Positions 42,030 to 57,960 are shown, numbered from the whole stretch's first letter. The stretch: 62,729 nt of DNA, filler included, from Callorhinchus milii (GCF_018977255.1; 4 parts of 4 records of this genome joined end to end with filler, not necessarily neighbours in it), one strand, 5' to 3'. Numbers and translations are program-made. The notes: generated by a model not told the origin, from the letters alone.

Positions 42030-42309
42030 CAGCCGCCGTATCTAACCGGGAAAACCGGCCAGGCCCTGAGACTGACCTGTGAATCCAGCGGGTTTAATCT
42101 CAGCATAGCACACATGTCCTGGTACCGGCAGCTTCCCGGGAAGCAGCAGGAAAATCTGCTCCAGTATGAAGGCTCATCCATCAAGTCATTCGGGTCCGGG
42201 TTTGAAAACCGTGTCATTGTCATCAGAGAAGATTCCCAAAGCATCTTCGATCTGATCATCAAATGCCCGACAGTGCACGACACCTCCACCTATTACTGTG
42301 AAATTAAGA
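42030..42309 (+). CDS. IGHV: Atypical VH exon (cluster E); 5' end and leader lost in the gap
   Basis: QPPYLTGKTGQALRLTCESSGFNLSIAHMSWYRQLPGKQQENLLQYEGSSIKSFGSGFENRVIVIREDSQSIFDLIIKCPTVHDTSTYYCEIK, open frame, canonical Cys/Trp/Cys present. Confidence 0.9.
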
Positions 42310-42348
42310 CACAGTGAGAGGAAACGGGGCTGAACTCCTACAAATACA
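42310..42348 (+). other. 23-RSS of VH-E
   Basis: CACAGTG + 23 + ACAAATACA, identical over 39 bp to 19873-19911. Confidence 0.9.
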
Positions 42349-42758
42349 CAAGGGCAGGAAAGGCAGCCCCTCCCACCCTAAACTGACTGAGGGCAAACAT
42401 GGTGTCAATGCTGTTTTGGGCCAAAATTTAAAGGAAAAGCTGAAGTTGCATTTACTATCAGACTGAACCCACACATTGAATCGGTGTTGATTGGGGCGCA
42501 AGACCTGGTTATCTGTGCTGTAATATTCTGTGATTTCAGACGGTCAGTGACACTGTGCTGTTGAGGCGGGAAGAACTGCGATTGGAGACTGATTACATGA
42601 CGGTTTAAAAACATCACCAAGTCACAAGCTGTTGGAAATAATTACATTCTGTTTCTGTGGATGTGAGGAAACTATGAGACAGATTCTGCGTCACGTCAGA
42701 GGAGAATAGTCACTTTCAGTGAATTTCGGCAGCCGATATTGTGCAGATATTGGGGATC

Positions 42759-42835
42759 AGTATTTGTATTGGGCTGTATCACTGTGTAAAGACAAGACAC
42801 AATGCTGCATTCAACCACCTCCTCATACAAAAACT
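42759..42835 (+). other. Diversity segment D1 (42787-42797, taaagacaaga), 12-RSS 5' and 22-RSS 3'
   Basis: agtatttgt-12-cactgtg | D | cacaatg-22-acaaaaact; the 12/22 D1 pattern matches shark IgM clusters. Confidence 0.88.
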
Positions 42836-43147
42836 CCTGCCACAGAGACTGCTGACTCCATTCATCATACAACATCCACAGCACCGATGTAAACGGCCCT
42901 GAAAATGGATAATTCTCAGAAATAACCTGCTGTTTAACAGACAAATTCCGGTTAATTTTGATTACAGGATGTTACTCAACGAGATTTACGTCTGTGGATC
43001 TGCTCGGACATTAAACGAAATTCTCTGGAAAACATAAGAATTTATTCTGACCGAAACATCTCAGGAGCCATCAAAGTATTCTCTGAACTGAGGTCCAGCA
43101 GTTGCCAGAAATTCAGGTTCAATATATGTTAGTTCATCCTGTGCAGG

Positions 43148-43213
43148 AGTTTTTGTCATGTTGTGTATCACTGTGACAAACGCCGCACGGCATTAACAGT
43201 CAATACAAAAACC
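43148..43213 (+). other. Diversity segment D2 (43176-43185, acaaacgccg), 12/12 RSS
   Basis: agtttttgt-12-cactgtg | D | cacggca-12-acaaaaacc. Confidence 0.88.
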
Positions 43214-43548
43214 CCTCAACACCAAACCAGCTAATCTCTTTCACTGCTCGCTTGTGTGGGTCCCACTGAATATTTGAGGAATTGGCATTTATAAAATGGT
43301 GTCTATTGTTGAGGATTTTATTACGATAATAGACACAACTCATTATATTTGTTCTTCAATCTGTTCTTGGCAAGAAAATGTGTTTGAGGTGAGCACTGCG
43401 AACTGGCAGAAAAGCAAATCATTCAACAGGTAAACACAGAGACAAGCAATTGTTTTCAGAACATTACAGAATTATATTGTGCGCTTCATTTGGTTTGGGG
43501 AAGCCAACATTTACTAATATTGTATTTGTGTGCCTTGCCCGCACCGTG

Positions 43549-43625
43549 GGTTGTTGCAGTGGGCAGCACACTGACTGCAGCACAGTGACAAAAGTACCAC
43601 GGCATTAACTATCAATGCAAAAACC
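43549..43625 (+). other. Diversity segment D3 (43588-43597, acaaaagtac), 23-RSS 5' and 12-RSS 3'
   Basis: ggttgttgc-23-cacagtg | D | cacggca-12-gcaaaaacc; 5' RSS nearly identical to the J RSS, 3' RSS nearly identical to that of D2. Confidence 0.8.
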
Positions 43626-44001
43626 CTCCAACCCCAAACCAGCTACTCTCTCGCTCTGTTCGCTTTTGTGTGTCCCACTGAATATGCGGAGCATTGGTGT
43701 TCGTAAAATGGTGCCGACCGCTGAGCAAATTGCCCGATTTAATAGATATAAAATATTACATTTCACCTTCAATCTGTTGGTGACAATAAAACGTGTTTGA
43801 CATGAACACTGCAAACTGGCAAAGATACAAACACTTAACAGGTAAACACGGAGCCAAGCGATTGTTTTCAGAACATTACAGAAATATATTGGGTATTGTA
43901 TTTGGTTTGGGAGAGCCAATATTTACAGTAATGTTGTGTTTGTGTGTCCTGCCCGCACAGCAGGTTGTTGCAGTGGGCAGCACACTGACTGTAGCACAGT
44001 G

Positions 44002-44040
44002 ACTACAAGGGTCAAGGCACCGTGTTGACTGTGACGGATG
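44002..44040 (+). CDS. IGHJ: JH segment (YKGQGTVLTVTD), 23-RSS at 43963-44001
   Basis: ggttgttgc-23-cacagtg, GQG-T-x-L-T-V-T motif, phase-1 donor g|gtaaga; Trp of WGxG replaced by Lys (aag 44007-44009). Confidence 0.88.
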
Positions 44041-46220
44041 GTAAGAAGCTGATCCTATCTCACTCACTTGTCTGAATTGTCTCTGTGTATATTTGTTTTG
44101 TTCACTTTAACACCTTTTTAATGTAATGATCTCTGCATGGACGGGCTACCTCACCCTTTGATACACGCTAAAGATTTTTAGCTGTCATTGCTTTCCACAC
44201 AACTCTTCTTTATGTATTATTCTCTAAATGTTTAGTTTATTGTTTGTGATATTTTTAGTGATTTGTGAATATCCAGCTGAAATTATAGTGATGGACATTC
44301 TGCAATGTTTGTTCGCGGTGACTGGCGACTGCTGTTTTTCGGGGATAATGTCGCCGGCAATTGTATAAAAGTGTTTCAAACTATGCCCAAATTTTGGAAA
44401 TCAGGACCCGAATGTCGCAGGATGAGTGACGGTAAGGTTATCTAATCGATTCCCACATGTATTTCAATCCGTTGTTTAATATAAGGAGCGTGGCTGAGGG
44501 TTAAAGATGTTCATCTGGGAGGAGGTGAGTGTGAGAGTAAAGCGGGTTGACACTGCTGGGATGTGACTGACAATGCCTCAACTCAAATCTGCACGAATGT
44601 TACAGAAATATTAGTGAATATTTTTATTTTAAGTAATAATACCATGAACGTGTTGCTCACAGTTTCTTTTCCTCAGCTGCCCATGCACCAGCCACGATAA
44701 TATGCAGCTCCTCTTTGATCTCATGCTTCATTTTAATTGATATTGCCAGCGGTTGGTTTAAACTGACTTCGATTCCTCACAGTGTACAGAGGTCGGTGTT
44801 GATCTACAATCATCAGCTTCCTGCTTTACACTAACTATCTTGCAGAAAAAACACAGATTTATTCATCAAACATATGTTCAAGTTTCAAGAGCAGACTGCA
44901 TTGTGAGGGATCCAGTTATTAATGACATGTATAACAAAAATCGAAACTGGTCACTGACATCAAACTAATGATATCATAGTTGATCATCACAAACTTCAGA
45001 CTTGGCAAAGATGAGGGTGAAAGGAAGACATTTCTCATTTTACTGTAATCACATGCTTTAGTTATTCTGTGTAACTGTTCATCTGCAAATATGAGTTTCC
45101 TGTTTTACATGAACTGATCAGCAGAAAAATTGCTAAAATTGTTGTTTTTCAGTAAACAAATGGTAAACTCTGAATAAGACGCTGCAATGAATCAGATACA
45201 TTTGTTTATGAGATGATTAACACACAGCGGTATTGATCACTGACATGAAGCTAATGATACCAGAACTGACCAGCTAAACTCCAGACTCAGCAGAGATGAT
45301 GGTGAAAGGAATTAGTTTCTGATTCGACTGTAAATACATGATTTGGTTATTCTGTGTAACTGTTTGAGCTGCAGGGAATTGTGACCGTGAGTTACTTTGC
45401 ACAATGTACAATGCATCGTGTGTGATGTGGATGGAGAGTGTGTGAGCTGCTGTGCGGTTACTGACAGCTTCAGGCTGAGGGAAAGTGAACATGGAGTAAC
45501 CTGTGGGTTACTGGATGGAAACACTGTGTGTTTGAGATGTGAGGGTTCAGGCTGTGACTGTGTGTGAGAACGGCGTTGAACAGTGTAATAGCAAACGGCT
45601 GAACCCGGACATCTCACTGTGGGGAGAGCGGTTGGGAGCTCGGTTCATGCTTAACCCTCAGATCGAGTAGTAGGAAAGAGCAAAGTGAAGGTTTGTTTTA
45701 TAAATATCTTCCCAGAGGCCGAGACATGCAAAGATGCTTTGTTTGTGAGGAGTCCGAGTTTTGGTAATGTGCAAAATCCCGCAGATTTGTAAATATTTGT
45801 TAAATTCAGATTGATTTCTAAAAAGAGGTTTCCCGAATTCTTAAGTAGAACTGGAATCCAAATTTAAAGTAAGTTTTACATTATTAGAAACTTCCGCGCC
45901 ATCTTAAAGTAAAGACATAATGATCTCCAAGTGTTTATTATCAGTTGAGGATTCGGATCTCAGAAGTGAATAATGTCTCTATTTGTATAATCAGTTAATT
46001 TTATTTATTGATAGCTTACAACTCGGTGACAGCAGGGGCTGGAAACAGACCCACAGACACCAGCACTGCTTGTTTTATATATTTATATCACCTGCCTCTG
46101 TCTGTCAGCCTGTGTGGCATGAATGCAGCGTGACCACAGGACATTTAACTGTCACCACATGAATCTAACACAATTCAGGGTAATACAGACTGTGAAGCAA
46201 AGCAGAATGTTATCCATTCT

Positions 46221-46605
46221 GTGGAGTCCTGCAGCTCCGGGTTCAGAGCACTCGCCTCGCAAGAGAGACAACCTGTGTTTGATTCCCGGGTAGTGTGAAA
46301 TGTCAGGAAGGTCTCCTTACTCCACACTTACAACAACAATTCGGTTTGCCTTACAGTAAGTAGCAACAAACCTGTTAGTCAATCAACAGATTGCTTCCCC
46401 GGAGGTATTAGTCTCTTCAATATATTAAAAATAAATGTGTCACTGAATGCACGACTGTTTGCGGAAAACTGCTGTACGCATTCGGATGCCGCATTTCGCC
46501 CACAAAAATACAGTGAATTCAATTTAGAGTGTATTCTTTGAAGCACTTTGAGACGTCTCGAAGACGTGATATGTCGCTATACCAAATGCAAGGAATATTC
46601 TATTT
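46221..46605 (+). mobile_element. Degraded full-length SINE in the J-C intron (second SINE 3' piece at ~46880-47010)
   Basis: Head gtggagtcctgcagctcc, core and tail. Confidence 0.75.
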
Positions 46606-47860
46606 ATTGTTTCAAATGTGAATGTAATATTGCTTTGCCCGATAGGCATGCAGCGTCACTGACATCAAACGCCGGACAGCGGCTTCTGCCTTTATTTCAC
46701 CATTTCACAGCTGATTGCGACAAAAATAACCATAGATATGTTGGGTATTTCCGTGTCCTGGGCACAACACTGATTGCAGTCCTTCATTCCTCATGTAAAC
46801 ACTGAACCTAACCATTTTAATCGTTCTCTAGTTTTGTAGATTACAAAATTAAGAGGGATCAAAATTCTTCAACAGTCAATCAAATATTTTTCGCACAGAC
46901 AATATACACTGATTTCACTTCACATTGTTTTCTGTGAAGCGCATTGAAATATCTCAAAGACTTGATAAGACGCTATTTCCAATGCAAGTGATATTATTCT
47001 TATCAATATTTAATGTACTATTTTAACAACACACATCGGCTGTCTGGTGGCCATTGACTGTGTCGATTCTGTCATCAATCTGAGCAGAGTAACTTGTTTT
47101 AATACATATCAGAGCCACAAAGAAATATGTTTGAAATCTTCTGACGATTGCATCAAAATTTAAGATTACCCAAATGTCTTAGTAACCTTGAAACAAAAAT
47201 ATTTTAGGAAATGAAACAGACGATTAGGAAATTGATGCAACAGTTTAGTTTCAGCGGCTTTTCTAAAAACTGCATACATACATACATACATACATACACA
47301 CATGAACACACACACATACAAACAGAGAACCTGCTTGGCCTGACAATGCTACCTTCATTTGTGTAGTGCCCCTTTTTGGTGTTTCAATGAAAGCAATACA
47401 CATGCGAGCTTTGACCCCAAGTTTATTGAACTGAGCAACATGAAGAAATCGGGCCGCAATCTACAGCCTTTTATCCGCAGAGCTATACCACACACTTCCT
47501 CAACAATTACTTCCACTTTGTTTCCTGGACACAAAGAGTGAATTTGGGTTAATCCGAGAAGGTATACAGTTAAACGCACAGTTACAAGTCATCCAATACA
47601 CGTGTTTATTCCTGAGTGGTATTCAGTCAGATGGAATTGAAACTCAACAGGTGCAATATCACGCAGTCCTTCAGGAAGTCTTGTTCAGTATTCCAGTAAA
47701 TTATTCCAACACCAAATGATGAGCATATTCGGAATCAGCAATCTGTGTTCAGCTCACCCACAATGTGAGAATATTCATGGACAGTATTGTTTAACTGACC
47801 GAATATGAAATCCTGGATATTGGTTGTTAATCCAGTTTCATGTATGTTTTCCTTTTCTAG

Positions 47861-48172
47861 AATGTGAGCAACCCACTGGGGGTGTGAAGGTCTCTTTCCT
47901 GCCACCCTCGCAGCAACAGGTTTTAATGGAGTCCACTGTAACGCTGACATGTGTCGTGGCCAATGCACCACTTGACGTCAACGTGACTTGGACACAAGGA
48001 AAGACACATTTACAGTCTGGATATGGGAAACCGTCTGCCACTGAGCCTCAGGAAGTGATCAGTAAATTAAACGTTTCTACACAGGACTGGAAGAGTGGGA
48101 AAGAATTCTTCTGCCTTGCCAATCATGAAGATATTCCAACTCCCATCGGAGAAAAGACATTTAAGAGGAAAG
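47861..48172 (+). CDS. IGHM: IgM Cmu3 exon (cluster E), intact
   Basis: ttttctag acceptor, ECEQPTGG...VTLTCVV...W...FCLANH...KRK, g|gtgagt donor, 312 bp. Confidence 0.88.
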
Positions 48173-48662
48173 GTGAGTAGCCATATTTCAGGAAATAAAT
48201 GATTTATTTGTTTATTGTAATTTCAGATTTCAGTCAACAGAAACAACTGGGAATACAATGATCAGCTCTCTGTTTGCTTCTTTTTCTGTTTGTCTTTCGA
48301 TAGATTTATAACCTCTCACAAAGGTCGGACAACAATTTATAGATAAAACTTGTTAAGTACATTCACTCACATGAATTATATCAACAAGAATCTAACCATC
48401 ATCTGGAGGATGTTTACACATGTTCTCAGGGAGCAGAGTTACCATATCTGAACCGCTGGTCACTGGGTGCATATAATAAAGTCCTGTCGGGGATTTCAAC
48501 CCACACCAATGTTCCTAGTCACACAAACAATTACAAACCACTGAGCACAGATTGAACAGAGACACAAACATTATTCTCAGCTTGTTCTGCAAGATCTGAT
48601 GCTTCAAAATATTCTATGATTGACACCATCATTGTATTGATCTGATTGCATTCTTCCCACAG

Positions 48663-49054
48663 TTATGTACACAAAACAACCTTCAGTGTATCTGCTCCTC
48701 CCCTCGGCAGAAGAAATGGCTGCTCAGCAGTTTGTCACCTTGACCTGCCTGGTGAAGGACTTCGCTCCCAAAGAGATCTTTGTGCAGTGGACTGTGAATG
48801 ACCAGTTGATTGATGCCAACAAGTACAGAAACACCGAGGTGATGGCAGACAGTGAAGATCTCAACTACTCCATGTACAGCATGTTAACCCTCTCAGTCGA
48901 TGAGTGGAACAGAAGACCCTCATACTCATGTGTGGTGGGCCACGAAACGTTCCCACTGAAGACCCTGACCAGAACCGTAAATAAATCCAGCGGTAAACCG
49001 AGTTTTGTAAACCTTGCACTTGTCCTGATGGACACCGTGAATCCGTGTCACTGA
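48663..49054 (+). CDS. IGHM: IgM Cmu4 plus secretory tail (cluster E), intact; membrane donor G|GTAAAC at 48993
   Basis: QPSVYLLLPSAEE...YSCVVGHE...SSGKPSFVNLALVLMDTVNPCH*; AATAAA at 49137-49142. Confidence 0.92.
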
Positions 49055-51100
49055 GTGTCTCTCAATACCATCTTGCTTGTCCTTTTGTGCACCCACCTTC
49101 TTGCCATTGCATTGTCAGTTTTCAACAATTAAATCAAATAAAGATCATTGTTTTATTGATGTATCAGGTACTTCGGATTGAATTAAAATTAATTACACAG
49201 ATATTTTCCAGCGTGAGGACTGATCCATTTTTTTTGGAAGCAATGCCAATATCAAGTTATTACCGCAGTCATTTTGGTGGTTACAATTAAGCGTGATGAT
49301 ATGTTTCCACATGTGTCATACACCGGGCTGACCACCACCCCACCCCAGACCCCTACGACTCCACCACCCACACACAACCCCCGAAAATATAAGTTGACAA
49401 TAAAGTCCCACTAATTCAACATCACTGGTTATAATCCAATCTCAAAACGAATTTTATTTGCAGTTTGTTTTATAATTGCACAGCACAGCTACACCTTTTC
49501 CCTTGCAGGATATTTTCTCTATCACTGAAAAGCATCGCATTCTACACGAAACAACATCTCAGATGTAAACTATGGCCTTTTTTGGTAAATTACCTATAAC
49601 AATGATACTTGTTCCACAGAAAAGATTTGGATAAGGTTACATATTCACTTGAACACTCGCTTAGCCACGCTTCTACATTGTAAATAAATACACTCATTCA
49701 CAATCTGCACACACGCTCAATCCACCCAAGTCCACATTTGCACTCATACACACAGACATTCGCACACTCATTCACTACCATGTCTACCCAGGCCCACACA
49801 AACTCACACACAACACTTCCACCCAGTCCCCACGCACTTAACTACATTCACACCAACCCAGGCCCTCACACACTTGATGGCCCTCAGGGATGAACCCTGT
49901 TCACTTATACCTCAATCTGTTTAGTTGATTTACACAAATGTTTTTGCTGGTTGTTCTATTGCTTTACAACAATATCAGCCATTTCGAAATAGAAATGGTG
50001 CCATTTATAAAAACGTTGATGATGAAAGAGTAGGGGACGCTGACAAATTCAGGAATAACCTGGGGAATTGCGTAATGTAACAGACATTTTAACTGAGTTT
50101 CCAGAGAGGTGGAAATGTAGTTCAATGTTGAGACACCAGTTTGTTGAAGTGTATTTATAGTAAAATAATCACTGCAGGAATAGCAGCAAAATAATTCTGT
50201 TATAAGTGGAATGGCAAAAAACTTGGAAACACGTCGATTGGAAAACGTATCGGAAGATCACTGAAACAGATTCTGTGATTTTCGCAAAGTTAATCGACTG
50301 TCAATGACATTTCAAGTTAACGGGATTGTGAGTGGATCACTACATGTGGTTCTGGACAATTTATCACACAAAGGACATAAGAGCTGCTGAGAGGGTTTTG
50401 GGCAGTTACACAAAGACCATGAAAATAATGCCTGTGATTGGCGCTGCAGCGAACAGCTACAAATATTGTTGCTGTACTTCTAAAAACACAAAGTAAAAGA
50501 AAAATTGAAGAGAGTCGTACCAAAGCATTTAAATCCATGAAGTCTTCAAAGACTGAAGCAACGAAAGAGGATTGTATCCATACAAACGGGATAAAACATG
50601 CAGGAAAGCCACTGTAACATATGAAGGATTAGTCAGTTCCTAAATTCAGATTTTTTAGAATATATTATGCTTTATCTCTAAACCATTATGTGAAGAAATT
50701 TAAAATGGAATTTGGACAGTCACTGTGTGAACGTACAATATAGGCAGAAAGGAGGAATTGGATGATTGGGGACGATATGTCCATTTTCTAACAGCGGAAT
50801 CTCAATGGTAGTATTTCCATCCTTCTGTTATTCCACGAATTTTAATTTCCCAAAATGTTCCCCCAGTTCTTTTTTGGATTCATTAGTTGTGAGCAAGAAA
50901 AAATAAAACCAAGATTCCTTTACTTCTGTTAAAACTAAACATTTAGAAAGAATTGATCGAAGGGAACGTGCAGTTTATTAAAGTGAGGGAGCCCGTGATC
51001 AACTGGGAAAATGCATAAAATTAACAAAAATTCGTTGAAAGCAGAAAGGCCTCAGGTTTGAATCCCATCTAAAGATATTTCCTTTTTTTTATCCTAACAG

Positions 51101-51231
51101 ATTTCCCAAACGAGATGATGCTGAAAGGTTTTCAAGAAGTACCAAGTGACAACCTGTGGCCTACTGCTTCCACCTTCATCATCCTCTTCTTCCTGAGTAT
51201 TATGTACAGCGCAGCCGTCACTCTAATTAAG
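51101..51231 (+). CDS. IGHM: IgM TM1 exon (cluster E), intact
   Basis: [44 protein letters not shown]|gt; phase matches the Cmu4 internal donor. Confidence 0.88.
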
Positions 51232-51795
51232 GTGATGAGAATAAATTATTTGACGCCATGATATGATGTAGCAGCTGATGTTGAATATTTGTTCCATAGG
51301 AACCCTCATTGTCATTCTCATTGCCACCACTTTGCTGAGAACTTTCCCTCTCTTTTTAGGCCAAGTTCCTTGTTACTGGGCTGTGTGAAGGTGATGAGAA
51401 TATCCTCTCCATTACAAACCCTATCGCACCTGAGATATGCTCACCTGGTATAGACTAGGCAAGGGCTAATGGTTCTTTACAGATTATGTACCTCTGTCTG
51501 TACATTGTGGACAATTTAAAGCATCATGAAATCGTTCTGTCTGCCACAGTTCCCAGCAAGCAACTAAAAATTAAAAGACAATCAGTTGGATTCGTGTATG
51601 TGTGACTGTGTGTGTGTGTGTTTGTTTATTTGTATTTGTTTTTGTGTATTTATTCTTGTTAGTGTGTTAGTGTCTGTGTTGATATATATATAAATATATA
51701 TATATATATACATATAGAACATTAAACATATGCCTGAACATGAATTCTCTATCTCGGCTGAAATCATTCATTATATATTTGCTTTTATTTTCCAG

Positions 51796-51804
51796 ATAAA
51801 TTGA
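51796..51804 (+). CDS. IGHM: IgM TM2 exon (IN*), cluster E; polyA signal at 52189-52194
   Basis: ttttattttccag|ATA AAT TGA at the position homologous to VK*/IK*. Confidence 0.72.
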   Translation: MN

Positions 51805-54800
51805 GTTTCTTCAGATCATATTCATCGATGTGTCTCGTCCGTCTGTGTTTAACAACGGTGTCTTGAGACTGATTATGTGCTGTCTTTTTTCCCCCATTAT
51901 AGAAATCAGCTGAAAATAAACAATGTGTTGTGCAACTATGTGAATTTTAGTACCTTTTCTTATCTTTAGTTTATTTTACAATATGCCTTTTGGAAACAAT
52001 AACTAATAATGTTACCATCACGGCTCTCTGATAGTCTTCATTTGCTGTTTAATTTTTTTGTGATGTAACGATACCGAAAGACAGTGACTGAGGTATCTAT
52101 GCTTTGATATTAATTTGATGCTCTATATATGTATTCACTCCTGTTTCTTAATGTCTGCAGATTCTCTATATTGTTACCGTGATATATCAATAAAGATGTG
52201 ACGGCTGATTGAGCTGTTTGATATTTTTATTTCCTGTTCCTTTTGTGTCAATTTTGCCTTTGCTCCTGATTTCCAAATTCGACAGATTCCAGTAAGTCAG
52301 CATTAAACAAAAGCTGTTAAATGTAATGTCCTACTTCAGATATAGCTTTGCTATAAAATTGTTCCACTTGAGTTATTCTTTGCTCCAGTGACCAGCAGCT
52401 GCTTCCGTCCCCAATGATCTGCCCCACACCCAGATACAGCTTCAGACACGTGGCTATTCTAATAGAATAACATGCATTTATGTGTTAGAGTATTTATGGA
52501 ACAATGCGCGTGTTCAATCTGTTTTATGCATTGACATAGTTTTATCTCCTGCCTCTGCTGAGCTGCACAATTTGAACCGAGCAGCTTCATGGGAAAAAAA
52601 TAAGTTGACAGATCAATAACAAAATACTCACAATTGCACAGTAAGGAGGAAATTCCCTGCACAAAAGTACATTTGTTCTGACCATTCTGTGACAACTTCT
52701 GCCGTTTGTTTCATCTACATTAGTATTCACGTATCTTACATGTAAATAATTTTCCAGCTCTATCAAAACATACATCATTTTTTTTGTACCATGTGCTGTT
52801 TTGACCTCTCGTCATCCAACCTCTGCATTTCCAGCCAACCCTATTAATGATTTGGGGATTAACCGTGCAGAAATGTGGTGCAATATTGACCTTGATTATC
52901 CTGCTAACTAAAAAGCACATTCCTTACTGTATCCTGTGTTCACTACGTTTAACATCCTCAGTTATATCTGCTTTCAACCTGATCTGATCCAATCCAACAG
53001 CTTAGTTGGAACATAAGAATGGTGTTACAATATAAGACCAGAGCCCGTCCAGTTCACCTTCCACTATCCTCATAGTGAAATTCACTTGTCATGGCCCCAA
53101 ATCTTTACCGTCCCCCAAGTTATAATTTCCTGAATTAGGTCTATCCCACATGCTTTTGAAATCATCTACAATTTCTGCGTTCACCGTCTCCAGAGCAATC
53201 CTGTTCTATACATTTACTGTCCTCCAAGATTATTTCCTGAAACAAATCTATCTTGTTTGCTTTTGAAAGAATCAAACCTTTCTGCTTTCACCGTCTCCGG
53301 AAGAATCCTGTTCCATACATTTATTGCTCACTCACTGAAATAGTGTGTACAGAGCTTTGCTTTGACGTTTAATTGCAGGAAATGTCCTCTGTTTTGACCA
53401 AAACACTGTAGGCCTCTTACCATTACCGTACTTGTGAATGATCCCTGTAGGTAAGGAATCACACTTGTATAAATCTTGACACTTTTATGCAGAATTTTTT
53501 GTATCCAGCAATTGGAAGTTGTTAATTACTGCCAAAATAAAGTCAGTATTGTGTTTGTACTGATTTCAAAGACTTGCCAAATTCTGCAAATTTCAAAATG
53601 TTACATGAATAAAGTATATTTAGACTCTGGTGGAATTCAGCCCATGAACACTTTCCATATCAAGTAGAATCGTCCTGTCCAAAACAATCCTTCATTTACT
53701 TCACAATTTTTCCATTCAGCTATCAATCCAAGGATGTTTGCGTCTTGCAATGGAAATATAGGAAGGAAATTATTCTGCAACAAGAGAAGGATGTTCATTT
53801 CTATAATCTTAAAGCAGCACAGACCATGCCATGCTATGGCCTGAGAAAGCAAATAGGATGTTGTGCAACATGCTTAACCAGTTGAGGCTCAAATCCTCGG
53901 AAAACGTCATGAAGCTGCACAGACATTGTTCAGACTGATTGTCCAAATGAAAGAGCCTGGACAAGATACTGCACAGAGAACAGCGAGGCTTATTTCCTCA
54001 GTGAGGTTGATGTTCTATGAGGAACAATTAATAAACTGGAGCGTATATTCATATGAAATTGTAATATATGATGATGTATGTATGTGAGTGTGTGTGTTTG
54101 TGTCCAAGAGAGAGAGGTAGAGAAAAAGAGAAATAGGGGGAGAGAGTGAAGGGAGAGAGAAATAAAGAGAGAAAGGGATAGAGAGGGAAGGAGGCTGGTT
54201 GGGGAATAATTTGCACTAAACAAAGCTGCAGGAATCAGGACTCTATTTAGGGGACAGTTTAATAGCAATATTTTTTTCAGGAAACAAGCAACATTGGAAA
54301 CTCTTGTTGCAGGAATGGAATTTATCTGCAAGTGCATGTAATGTCTGGCCAGTTTCCTATGTCCTGACCAATTAGAATTATCCTGTCAGTTATTGCTTTG
54401 GCCTACAGTGTTAGCATGACCCAAATTAAACACATTTCAAATGCCACCTTAAACAGTTTGCCACTCTGGTCCTTCGAATGAGGCAGTCAGGTTGACTGGT
54501 TTGTCAACAACACGGCGTGAAATATTAAGGACTCACTTGGCTCAGGAACACAATGATCGAGATCACTACAAAGGCTTTGTTCAATTCCCATATTTTATGC
54601 CAAGTGTCCCACCCTGGAATCAGTTAAGCTCCAGTGAGACCCGTTTCCTCCTCTCACCCCTTCCCCTCCGCACCGCACACCACTTCTGGCCACAATAACC
54701 AAAGGCAGAATAGAATACAACGAATATATCCACAATGTATAAACTTGAGTAAAATCAAATTTAACAATCGCTCAGGTTTGGAGGTAACTAACTTTAATGA

Positions 54801-56274
54801 ACACTTTACTGAATCCATCAAGCAACATTTGAAGAAAAACATGACATTGGTCACGTGATGTTCTGAGAGTGAATCAGTTTCTTATCTGCAGGAAACACCT
54901 GCACTTTCTCAAACTAAATTAGAGCAGCTTCATCTCAATATAAACCTAACCTTAAACCAGCTGCCAGAAACTAGTTAAAAATATTACAAAAAACAACACA
55001 GTGTCTTTTCCATACACGCCTCATGCCAGTGGAAATCAAATAATTCTATCAGAAATTGTTCTGCAGGGGATATAAAGCTGTTGAACTTTATTTGTATCTG
55101 TTGGAGAATACTTCACAAGACAGCTTTAATATTGTCTGGCAGCAAATTAATGACAAATGCGTATCTTACAAAGCTTAACATCTTCCAGAAAGTGAATGTT
55201 TGGAAAGACATTCCTTGATTATTTAATGTTTATATAATTATAACCTCTCCACGCAAACTTTATATTTCAGAAGGAAAAAAAAGTTCGAAACCTACTGTTG
55301 ACTAGCGTACAATAATTCGCACCACAAAGAATAACAATATACAGAAGGTATTATGGCAGCATTAATTATCGAAAATTAATAGCTAAACAAGGAACGTGTG
55401 TGAACGTGTTAGTTTCTTTCAGTGAGTGAAACAGAAACGCTCCAATGATCTTTGGACATGTGTTTTAGGGAATATTATTTTGAAATCAATAGTATATAGG
55501 AAATATTGTAACTTTCATGTCTTAGGAAGTTGACGTAAGATGTTTTTTATTCTGTCTGTCCGAATGCTGATGTTAACCTGCAGTGTGTCCATTAATTAGG
55601 ATCATTTCGCTCAATCCCCACCTTGAGACTTTGAACGCAGAGTGTACCATTAAACATATGCAGTAACCTGGCTCTGTTGTCTGCACTCTGGCCTGTCAGT
55701 CAGAAGGCCGTGGGTTCAAGCCCCATGTCTGCATGTGAAACTGATGAATTCCAGGCCGACACTGTAATACAGTGCAGGGGGTGAACTACATTGTTGGAGA
55801 TTTTCTCTCACTTCTTATTTACTTTATAGATGTCCCATACCCCTGTTTTCATAAAGAGAGAATAGCTCAAACTAATCGGACAAAAATCACCACTGTACAC
55901 GTTAACATTAAATTACTAATAAAAATAATCCTTGCATTCGATACAACGTGTTAAATTCGTCTGTAAGTGCTTCAGACAATATAATGTGAAGTAAATTGAC
56001 TTTTGAATTTGTGGGAGAATGTGGCGGTCAATTGCACCCAGCAATGTTCCACCAAAAGACAAGCAGTGGAATGACCAATTTCTTCTTATTAATATTACTT
56101 TATATTGCACCATAATAATATCAGCATTTCAGACGCCGTTTTTTCGTGCTTTTGAGCATTCTCAGAGTAGGATTGTGGCCAGGACAAGGGAGAACCTCCC
56201 GTTTTAGTTCACATAGTGCCCTGAATTCTTTAACCTCCATTTACACAGACAGACAAACCTCGGTTTAATATCCC

Positions 56275-56915
56275 ACCGGAAAGATTGCAGCCTCACTATG
56301 CGGCACCACCCGAGCACTGTGTTGCATTATCAGCCGGGACTACATGAGATCAAAATGTCAATGTTGACACACAATCTCTTGTCAGAGGCGAAACTATTGC
56401 CATGTGAAACAGACTGATAAACATTTCGTGGCTGCGTTTCATTCACCTGCATCATGCAGTCACTAAACTCTGCAGTAAATCATTTTAAGCGATTAAGATA
56501 TCTTCAAGCCAGGAAATACGCTGTATAAAATGTAAAAATTATTATACTCGATTTGGCGACGCTGTGTATTAAATAATATATATAATAATAATAATTATTA
56601 TTATTACCGGAAAGATTGCAGCCTCACTATGCGGCACCACCCGAGCACTGTGTTGCATTATCAGCCGGGACTTCATGAGTCAAAATGTCAATGTGGACAC
56701 ACAATCTCTTGTCAGAGGCGAAACTATTGCCATGTGAAACAGACTGATAAACATTTCATGGCTGCGTTTCATTCACCTGCATCATACAGTCACTAAACTC
56801 TGCAGTAAATCATTTTAAGCGATTAAGATATCTTCAAGCCAGAAAATACGCTGTATAAAATGTAAAGATCACTATACACGATATGGCGAAGCTGTGTATT
56901 AAATAATATATACAG
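56275..56915. repeat. Recent 331-bp tandem duplication
   Basis: accggaaagattgcagcctcac starts at 56275 and 56606; very few differences. Confidence 0.9.
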
Positions 56916-57639
56916 TAATAATAATCCTTTCGTATAGCGCTTTTCACGTCATCTCGACGTCTCAAATAGTCTGTGAAGTGAATTGACAGGATACTAGAGG
57001 GCGAAATGCGCAGCCAATTGCGCACAGCAGTGTCCAGCAAACAGTCGTGGTTTGAAGAGAACAACTATATCTTGTTTTATTTTGCAGAGGGAATATTATC
57101 AGGCGTGTGGTGTAAGGAAACTTACCCCCACGACACCCACCCCGCAAAAAGTATTCAAACTGAAACTGAATAACCAACATCAGTTGAAACAACAGTTGAG
57201 AGCAATAATACAGTGTCTATCAGTCCATTGATTATAGAAAATAAGACGTTTGGAGTAAAAAAGTGACAATTTGCTCCATTGAATGTCTGCTGGCTACTTG
57301 AAGGACAATCCTTTTCAGCCAATATACTTGCCCTACATTTGATGCCCTTTCAGATATGTCTCTGGATATCTTGTGAAAATGTATATGGTTGTGTCACAAA
57401 CATTACTCCTGTCAGGCATTCCACAGCGAAATATCTAAGTTAAGGCCTTTAGTCAATGATTTGAACGATCGTGAAAATAGTTTATCTATATTAAAAACTC
57501 TCGATCTCTATCAAGCTGCCCGCCCACGTCATACGCCCCCCACCCAACCACCCGCCCACCAATAATTCAGACGATTTTTACAAGACCATACCTTATTCTT
57601 TACTTATCAGATATCCCGTCACTCCCAGATTATCTGTTT

Positions 57640-57940
57640 ATTATTTGTAGAGCGCTCACTTCTCAAGGAAGCCTTGTGGGTTCGATTCCCGGCAGGGCGA
57701 AACTTTGGACAAGTTTCCCGACTCCACGAATCTAACATTAATCCCTCAAGAGAAAAGTAAGAATAATAAATAGGTCATTTCAAACGAGAACTGTGTTTGA
57801 CACACTGCAATAGACTGCCTCCATTTGCCCACAAACGTACAGCTTAATTTATATCGTAGAATACTTTGTGAAGCACTTTGTGACATCCAGAAGATGTGAA
57901 AAGCACCATATAATATACATGGATTATTAATATTAATTAT
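57640..57940 (+). mobile_element. Degraded full-length SINE
   Basis: B box ggttcgattccc, degraded core and tail. Confidence 0.65.
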
Positions 57941-57960
57941 TATTTTAATGTGGAAACGTT

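Follow-up and report, generated by a model that had tools for sequence, protein, structure and literature searches.

A 62,729-nt stretch of Callorhinchus milii DNA (GCF_018977255.1; four parts of the genome joined end to end with filler, hereafter the window) carried an immunoglobulin heavy-chain (IgH) cluster with an unusually short constant (C) region. The piece analysed, positions 42030-57960 of the window (15.9 kb), had no N within it and held one such cluster on the plus strand, in the order V-D1-D2-D3-J-Cmu3-Cmu4/sec-TM1-TM2, where sec is the secretory tailpiece and TM1 and TM2 are transmembrane (TM) exons. Its top protein matches were all from C. milii, the source species. The cluster was in germline form, with V, D and J separate and each provided with a recombination signal sequence (RSS). 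All 8 splice sites were GT/AG, the junctions at J, Cmu3, Cmu4 and the cryptic TM donor were in phase 1, and the frames were open in both spliced forms, secreted and membrane. The features of the cluster were as follows.

42030-42309, plus strand: exon of the heavy-chain variable (VH) domain, 5' end cut by the edge of the piece, identified by translation and by a Pfam V-set match (2.6e-13)
42310-42348, plus strand: 3' RSS of V, CACAGTG, 23-bp spacer, nonamer ACAAATACA
42759-42835, plus strand: D1 with its signals, AGTATTTGT, 12-bp spacer, CACTGTG on the 5' side and CACAATG, 22-bp spacer, ACAAAAACT on the 3' side
42787-42797, plus strand: D1 coding sequence, TAAAGACAAGA
43148-43213, plus strand: D2 with its signals, AGTTTTTGT, 12-bp spacer, CACTGTG and CACGGCA, 12-bp spacer, ACAAAAACC
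43176-43185, plus strand: D2 coding sequence, ACAAACGCCG
43176-44001, plus strand: tandem unit of about 412 bp in two copies (D2 to D3 and D3 to J), from alignment and repeat families
43549-43625, plus strand: D3 with its signals, GGTTGTTGC, 23-bp spacer, CACAGTG and CACGGCA, 12-bp spacer, GCAAAAACC
43588-43597, plus strand: D3 coding sequence, ACAAAAGTAC
43963-44040, plus strand: J with its 5' RSS, GGTTGTTGC, 23-bp spacer, CACAGTG, and splice donor G/GTAAGA
44002-44040, plus strand: J coding sequence, (D)YKGQGTVLTVTD, with Lys at the usual Trp103 position
44041-47860, plus strand: J-to-C intron, 3.8 kb, with SINE-like (short interspersed element-like) repeats and a (CATA)n microsatellite
47861-48172, plus strand: Cmu3-like exon, 104 codons, phase 1 at both ends, first residues ECEQPTGG with a hinge-like Cys
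48663-49054, plus strand: Cmu4 with secretory tailpiece GKPSFVNLALVLMDTVNPCH, stop codon at 49052-49054
After 48992, plus strand: cryptic TM donor G/GTAAAC within the Cmu4 exon
49137-49142, plus strand: AATAAA, 83 nt past the secretory stop
51101-51231, plus strand: TM1, with a transmembrane motif matching shark membrane IgM chains
51796-51804, plus strand: TM2, encoding I, N and stop
51915-51920, plus strand: AATAAA, 111 nt past the membrane-form stop

The V exon encoded a full VH domain (translation QPPYLTGKTGQALRLTCESSGFNLSIAHMSWYRQLPGKQQENLLQYEGSSIKSFGSGFENRVIVIREDSQSIFDLIIKCPTVHDTSTYYCEIK; first visible residues of framework region (FR) 1 QPPYL, last residues YYCEIK), and the closest solved structures were VH domains and nanobodies, not V domains of light chains or of the T-cell receptor (TCR). 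From 'LTC' in FR1 on, it was identical to UniProt A0A4W3GHW0 of C. milii, the N-terminus of which differs. FR2 was WYRQLPGKQQENLL, read as W36-Y37-R-Q39-L-P-G-K-Q44-Q45-E-N47-L in a numbering taken from alignment to human and camelid VH. By this alignment, hydrophilic residues occupied all four camelid hallmark positions (Y37, Q44, Q45 and N47), the corresponding residues of conventional C. milii, Hydrolagus and human VH being V37, G44, L45 and W47. In J, Trp103 was replaced by Lys, and one paralogue had Val at the same place (DYVGRG). The interface residues Q39 and Y91 were retained. An N-glycosylation sequon, NLS, was present in complementarity-determining region (CDR) 1 at 42096-42104; in one paralogue the sequon was NIT, two residues along, and another paralogue had none. 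An extra cysteine was located in FR3 (codon 42264-42266, Kabat about 82b), where the conventional IKSP reads IKCP. This residue was shared with the WFRQ subfamily of V genes and absent from the WKRQ subfamily (see below). No Cys encoded by the germline CDR1, CDR2, D segments or J could pair with it; the hinge-like Cys at 47863-47865, where Cmu3 begins, and a Cys formed at a junction are candidates for that role.

The J segment was followed by the 3.8-kb intron and then directly by Cmu3. Searches for an exon or remnant of Cmu1 or Cmu2 by tblastn with C. milii and Hydrolagus queries, against the piece and against the intron alone, gave at most 22 bits, and holocephalan and shark Cmu1 and Cmu2 profiles, run on six-frame translations of both strands with stops tolerated, matched only the two C exons already listed. 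A tblastn match of model P0007 that began at 47605 and ran into Cmu3 was considered as a Cmu2 remnant and rejected as an over-extension of the Cmu3 match, because the targeted tblastn and profile searches found nothing there. Weak matches to Cmu1 and Cmu2 on the minus strand at about 45311-45490 (22 bits or less) were taken as chance, their order being wrong for an immunoglobulin domain. Dispersed repeats, in both orientations, lay in this intron and downstream of the cluster (46230-46300, 55660-55730, 57645-57705, 46440-46600, 46925-46990, 56925-57050 and 57860-57920; inverted pairs I1 and I3). The tRNA-like heads of some of them (GGTTCGATTCCCGG-type box) suggest that these are SINEs, although ARAGORN and Rfam made no call on them.

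The two C exons aligned end to end with residues 221-453 of human mu, that is, Cmu3, Cmu4 and tailpiece (1.5e-48). Compared with conventional C. milii IgM, the first C exon shared 63.6% identity with Cmu3 versus about 22% with Cmu2, and Cmu3 and Cmu4 of the cluster were 74-82% identical to their C. milii IgM counterparts. The Cys position at the start of Cmu3 was common to other C. milii clusters, in which it occurs as EC(D/E/M)xP or CPDCP. The TM exon kept the antigen-receptor motif, as in shark membrane IgM, and the two-residue TM2 has parallels in shark TM2 exons, which encode VK or IE. The predicted chain had about 355 residues and five N-glycosylation sequons. An AlphaFold2 model of V-J-Cmu3-Cmu4 showed three folded immunoglobulin domains (mean predicted local distance difference test score 77), a flexible linker of low confidence at ECEQP and a disordered tail; its last two domains superimposed on human IgM-Fc (7qdo_A) with a template-modelling (TM) score of 0.86 and a root-mean-square deviation of 2.4 over 210 residues. 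The penultimate Cys of the tailpiece was retained.

The signals were arranged as V-23, 12-D1-22, 12-D2-12, 23-D3-12 and 23-J, the numbers being spacer lengths. The 12/23 rule was obeyed across the cluster and would allow joins of V to D1 or D2, of D1 to D2 only, of D2 to D3 or J and of D3 to J, in two to four joins; by this rule, D2 would therefore be obligatory and D1 and D3 optional. Cartilaginous-fish clusters usually have two D segments (PMC1845163), and 22-bp RSS spacers like that of D1 are on record in shark (PMC8692893). A relaxed heptamer-spacer-nonamer scan of the 15.9 kb returned 8 sites, versus 0.34 expected in shuffled sequence, and six of the eight flanked V, D and J; the signals 3' of D2 and D3 fell below the threshold of the scan, with nonamers that were perfect or near-perfect. 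The A-rich D segments encoded KDK/KTR (D1), TNA/QTP/KR (D2) and TKV/QKY/KS (D3), with a single stop, in frame 1 of D1, unlike the Gly/Tyr/Ser-rich CDR3 of the conventional C. milii cDNAs P0001 and P0002.

D3 was evidently created by the tandem duplication of about 412 bp that spans the region from D2 to J. The two copies shared 76% identity between the signals, while their 12-RSS were identical at 25 of 28 positions and their 23-RSS at 38 of 39, for which a binomial estimate from the background rate gives a probability of about 4e-4. This excess over the surroundings suggests that constraint acts on both signals. Adjoining the nonamer of the D3 23-RSS was a further RSS-like site with a 12-bp spacer in 5' orientation (43521-43548; TGTATTTGT, 12-bp spacer, CACCGTG), and a weaker copy of it preceded J (43935-43962; TGTGTTTGT, 12-bp spacer, CACAGCA). 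The extra site could be what is left of an older signal; alternatively, it could act as a cryptic target of the 22-spacer signal at D1.

Three further IgH gene models of C. milii (P0003, P0005/6 and P0058/60) carried three different Cmu4 sequences that were 96-98% identical to that of the cluster, and all shared the tail FVNLALVLMDTV (NLALVLMDTV); there are therefore at least four copies of this subtype. The two with V and J, P0005/6 and P0058/60, also shared the FR2, the FR3 Cys and the Trp-less J, and the differences between the paralogous V sequences were mostly in CDR1. Two other V subfamilies with hydrophilic FR2 were observed, WFRQLPGKQRE(K/N)LL (P0057/64) and WKRQFPGKQRENFL (the P0007 group, WKRQ..KQRENF). 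In the P0007-group models, J (DYWGQG) runs straight into Cmu2-Cmu3-Cmu4 without Cmu1. In a maximum-likelihood tree of C. milii V genes with conventional Hydrolagus VH, the three hydrophilic-FR2 subfamilies, that of the cluster among them, formed one clade (Shimodaira-Hasegawa-like approximate likelihood ratio test 97) apart from conventional VH. The Cmu4 subfamily of the cluster formed its own clade (99), and its Cmu3 and Cmu4 had each diverged by about 20% in protein sequence from all other C. milii copies, with all immunoglobulin core residues retained. The V-J junction 'KTHDY' seen in paralogue models was considered as a germline-joined VDJ and rejected; it is best read as a product of modelling on germline DNA, because it equals a splice from a GT in the V heptamer to an AG in the J heptamer.

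An earlier note, made from the sequence alone, had described a gap-free contig carrying the elements listed above in open frames with phase-1 splicing and compatible RSSs, an IgM-derived C region reduced to Cmu3 and Cmu4, and concurrent alteration of three parts that normally contact a light chain, namely the FR2 interface, Trp103 of J and Cmu1. Each of these stood: the elements, frames and 12/23 arrangement were found as stated, the alignment to human mu identified Cmu3-Cmu4-tailpiece, the tblastn and profile searches for Cmu1 and Cmu2 were negative, and the three light-chain-contact changes were borne out by alignment, by the reading of J and by the exon searches. Taken together, the sequence supports the interpretation of the cluster as built for light-chain independence, and it is probable that the locus is a germline, IgM-derived C. 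milii IgH cluster for a light-chain-free chain with two C domains.

The way in which such a chain would be made can be outlined. In cells of the B lineage, RAG would assemble V-(D1)-D2-(D3)-J in two to four joins, giving a CDR3 from short A-rich D segments coding for Lys, Thr, Asp, Gln and Arg, and the VDJ exon would be spliced directly to Cmu3 (44040 to 47861) with the junction peptide GQGTVLTVTDECEQPTGGVK. The lone V would be kept soluble by its hydrophilic interface. Cmu1 is the partner of the light chain in the interchain disulfide. Its equivalent CH1 is also the domain by which BiP retains a heavy chain that has not yet met a light chain (PMC12227049). With no Cmu1, the chain would lack both the docking domain and the retained domain, and could therefore leave the cell alone. 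Two V-Cmu3-Cmu4 chains would pair into a homodimer by way of Cmu4 and of the Cys in ECEQP, where Cmu3 begins; the tailpiece Cys could support polymers; and the TM exons, with the common motif for Ig-alpha/beta association, would yield a B-cell receptor form.

Several observations weigh against this reading, and most of them can also be accommodated by a silent or decaying cluster, that is, a heavy-chain-only IgM with a further Cmu2 deletion that has ceased to rearrange and to yield protein, its open frames being due to recent duplication or gene conversion among copies, not to selection. Searches of large protein collections aimed at rearranged cDNAs or at junctions of J with Cmu3 returned germline gene models only, and all copies of the subtype come from one genome; the Cmu4 copies, at 96-98% identity, could be young. 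The tailpiece sequon, present as FVNIS or FVNVS in every other IgM tail compared, was lost (FVNLA, 49010-49018), with NLA in 4/4 copies of the subtype. The tailpiece glycan influences the size of IgM polymers in mammals, so the polymer state may differ here. The FR3 Cys is odd and unpaired, the Lys-rich D segments measure only 10-11 nt, and D2 and D3 have poor 3' heptamers (CACGGCA). In the Ensembl/UniProt models of two paralogous loci, J is joined to Cmu4 with Cmu3 left out (five models, P0005, P0006, P0030, P0058 and P0060, run from J or V to Cmu4 without it); gaps in the assembly, loci that lack a Cmu3 exon or genuine skipping of the exon could account for this. Finally, the edge of the piece cuts the V exon, so that the leader, the promoter and the first five or so codons of FR1 fall outside, and the term 'complete' in the earlier note goes beyond the sequence at the 5' end; no Ig octamer was found in the piece, as expected with the V promoter lying beyond it, and P0055, a UniProt paralogue or allele with 98% identity in V, has a normal leader, MRSLISLSVLLAVFSRVQA.

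A decaying locus, however, fits less well with a cluster in which nothing is broken: every exon is open, the splice sites are canonical, neither poly(A) signal is missing and the TM motif is intact. Within an old duplication, the RSS blocks have stayed at 38/39 against 76% in their surroundings; the C region has diverged by about 20% from every other C. milii IgM with its core residues all kept; and the differences among paralogous V sequences are mostly in CDR1. A silent or decaying cluster is thus regarded as unlikely. Still less probable is an assembly artefact, in which the assembler would have collapsed a locus that really holds Cmu2, possibly along with a stand-in for Cmu1, between J and Cmu3. 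C. milii has many near-identical IgM clusters that are hard to assemble, and the J-C intron contains dispersed repeats, but the piece has no N, the independent P0003 model extends across the matching intron sequence directly ahead of Cmu3, models of two other paralogues run from J to a downstream C exon without Cmu1 or Cmu2, and the changes in V and J fit a chain without Cmu1. Least probable of all is an expressed but non-autonomous chain, whose V pairs with a light chain, another V-bearing partner or a surrogate partner or trans-rearranges with TCR loci, since, in spite of the retained Q39 and Y91 and of the TCR-linked VH genes on record in shark and elephant shark (PMC12227049), five interface positions are hydrophilic together (Y37, Q44, Q45, N47 and K103), there is no Cmu1 for a heavy-light disulfide, and D, J, C, secretory and TM exons are all present in the cluster itself.

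Downstream of TM2, in the roughly 6 kb from 52000 to 57960, no further immunoglobulin exon was found by tblastn or profile search, so that any further cluster must lie at a distance of more than 6 kb. This region contained a 330-bp unit in two tandem copies with 95% identity (56275-56925) and without coding signal. Scans of the piece for tRNA genes and against Rfam gave no RNA gene.

To our knowledge, light-chain-free antibodies have few origins, namely those of camelid antibodies, of shark IgNAR and of the IgM derivatives of chimaeras, and such antibodies are a source of single-domain binders for research and medicine. If the two-domain chain is expressed, the elephant fish would carry a graded light-chain-free IgM series, Cmu2-Cmu3-Cmu4 and Cmu3-Cmu4, beside the four-domain form of ratfish, and no natural antibody heavy chain of this kind would be smaller than a V with only the two IgM domains that form the Fc. 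The features of its own would be Lys103, the FR3 Cys, three Lys-rich D segments with D2 obligatory, and a glycan-free tailpiece. The locus would offer a system for asking what Cmu2 and the tailpiece glycan do in IgM assembly and how a private D set shapes a single-domain repertoire. That the two-domain V-Cmu3-Cmu4 chain is both expressed and previously undescribed is put forward only tentatively, as a possibility on the doubtful side.

Judged by its sequence, the cluster belongs to the holocephalan IgM-derived heavy-chain-only family, with a more reduced C region. Heavy-chain-only IgM genes were reported from the spotted ratfish (Rast et al. 1998, Immunogenetics 47:234, as cited in PMC3149040), reviews use the term 'holocephalin IgM HCAbs' (PMC11659936), and heavy-chain-only genes of fish including elephant fish and ratfish, with their CDR3 repertoire, were treated by Anumukonda et al. 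(2022, Eur J Immunol 52:247, as cited in PMC12227049). The heavy-chain-only kind is therefore already known, in C. milii itself, and the earlier note overstated the novelty of the locus in this respect; its account of a ratfish cluster type lacking a typical CH1, with a second CH2-like exon instead, agrees with the description in PMC3149040, and the cluster is indeed more reduced than that precedent, having Cmu3 and Cmu4 only and no Cmu2-like exon. In the ratfish IgM cluster, as described there, CH1 was lost along with a duplication of CH2, and a light-chain-free dimer was predicted. The cluster resembles these genes in its animal group, and those of Anumukonda et al. even in species; in being an autonomous IgM-type cluster without Cmu1 but with a mu tailpiece and TM exons; and in a V of the hydrophilic-FR2 lineage, apart from conventional VH. 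The architecture is not that of the ratfish gene, in which, on the same account, a second Cmu2-like exon replaces Cmu1 to give four C domains, whereas the cluster has no Cmu2-like exon; it also differs from the C. milii WKRQ..KQRENF subfamily, which has Cmu2-Cmu3-Cmu4 in gene models. What appears distinctive relative to the known family is the loss of Cmu2 on top of that of Cmu1, and the Cmu3-Cmu4-only layout, Lys103, three D segments, the FR3 Cys and the lack of a tailpiece sequon set the cluster apart from the forms described in the sources compared. These traits may already be included in the 2022 paper; if that paper covers the subtype, the value of the present locus is that of a well-annotated example.

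Among less closely related systems, IgNAR is also light-chain-free and is encoded by private clusters of one V, three D and one J, with up to four joins and CDR3-centred diversity (PMC8692893, PMC6260137); a Cys-bearing secretory tail and TM exons are likewise shared. However, the V of IgNAR is not a VH and has no CDR2, whereas that of the cluster is a full VH, and IgNAR has five non-mu C domains versus two mu domains here; moreover, IgNAR was not found in elephant shark (PMC1845163). Conventional C. milii IgM (P0001, P0002) shares with the cluster the leader (via paralogue P0055), the V framework family, 74-80% identity in Cmu3 and Cmu4, the splice phases and the TM design, but has Cmu1 and Cmu2, a conventional FR2 and the tail FVNISLVLMDTVNACQ. 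Nurse shark IgM1gj (P0034) has lost Cmu2 as well, its preceding domain running straight into Cmu3, but keeps Cmu1 and a conventional FR2, WVRQIQGQGLEWL. The VDJ of IgM1gj is reportedly germline-joined, and the chain is said, in work of Rumfelt et al. from 2001, to pair with light chains.

The heavy-chain antibodies of camelids provide a further parallel in design. Hydrophilic substitutions are found at the same four FR2 positions as in camelid VHH, Y37 and Q44 are residues also used by camelids, and R45 occurs in the hydrophilic-FR2 sister subfamilies of the cluster's V. As in camelid IgG2 and IgG3, there is no CH1 in the chain, and V leads through a short linker with a Cys into two Fc domains, with Cmu3 and Cmu4 as the counterparts of gamma CH2 and CH3. 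The differences are that the cluster is mu, not gamma, that it has its own D and J in a private cluster, which conventional VH do not share, and a Cys tailpiece, and that its CH1 exon is physically absent, whereas camelids retain a CH1 exon that is skipped at splicing because its donor site is mutated. The likeness is thus one of convergence and independent origin, not of descent. If the light-chain-free reading holds, the shortest IgM form of the elephant fish converges on camelid IgG2 and IgG3 both in the V interface and in the layout of V, linker and two Fc domains, and the same three-part solution, with FR2 made hydrophilic, Trp103 lost and the domain that docks the light chain removed, would have arisen again on an IgM scaffold about 400 million years from camels.

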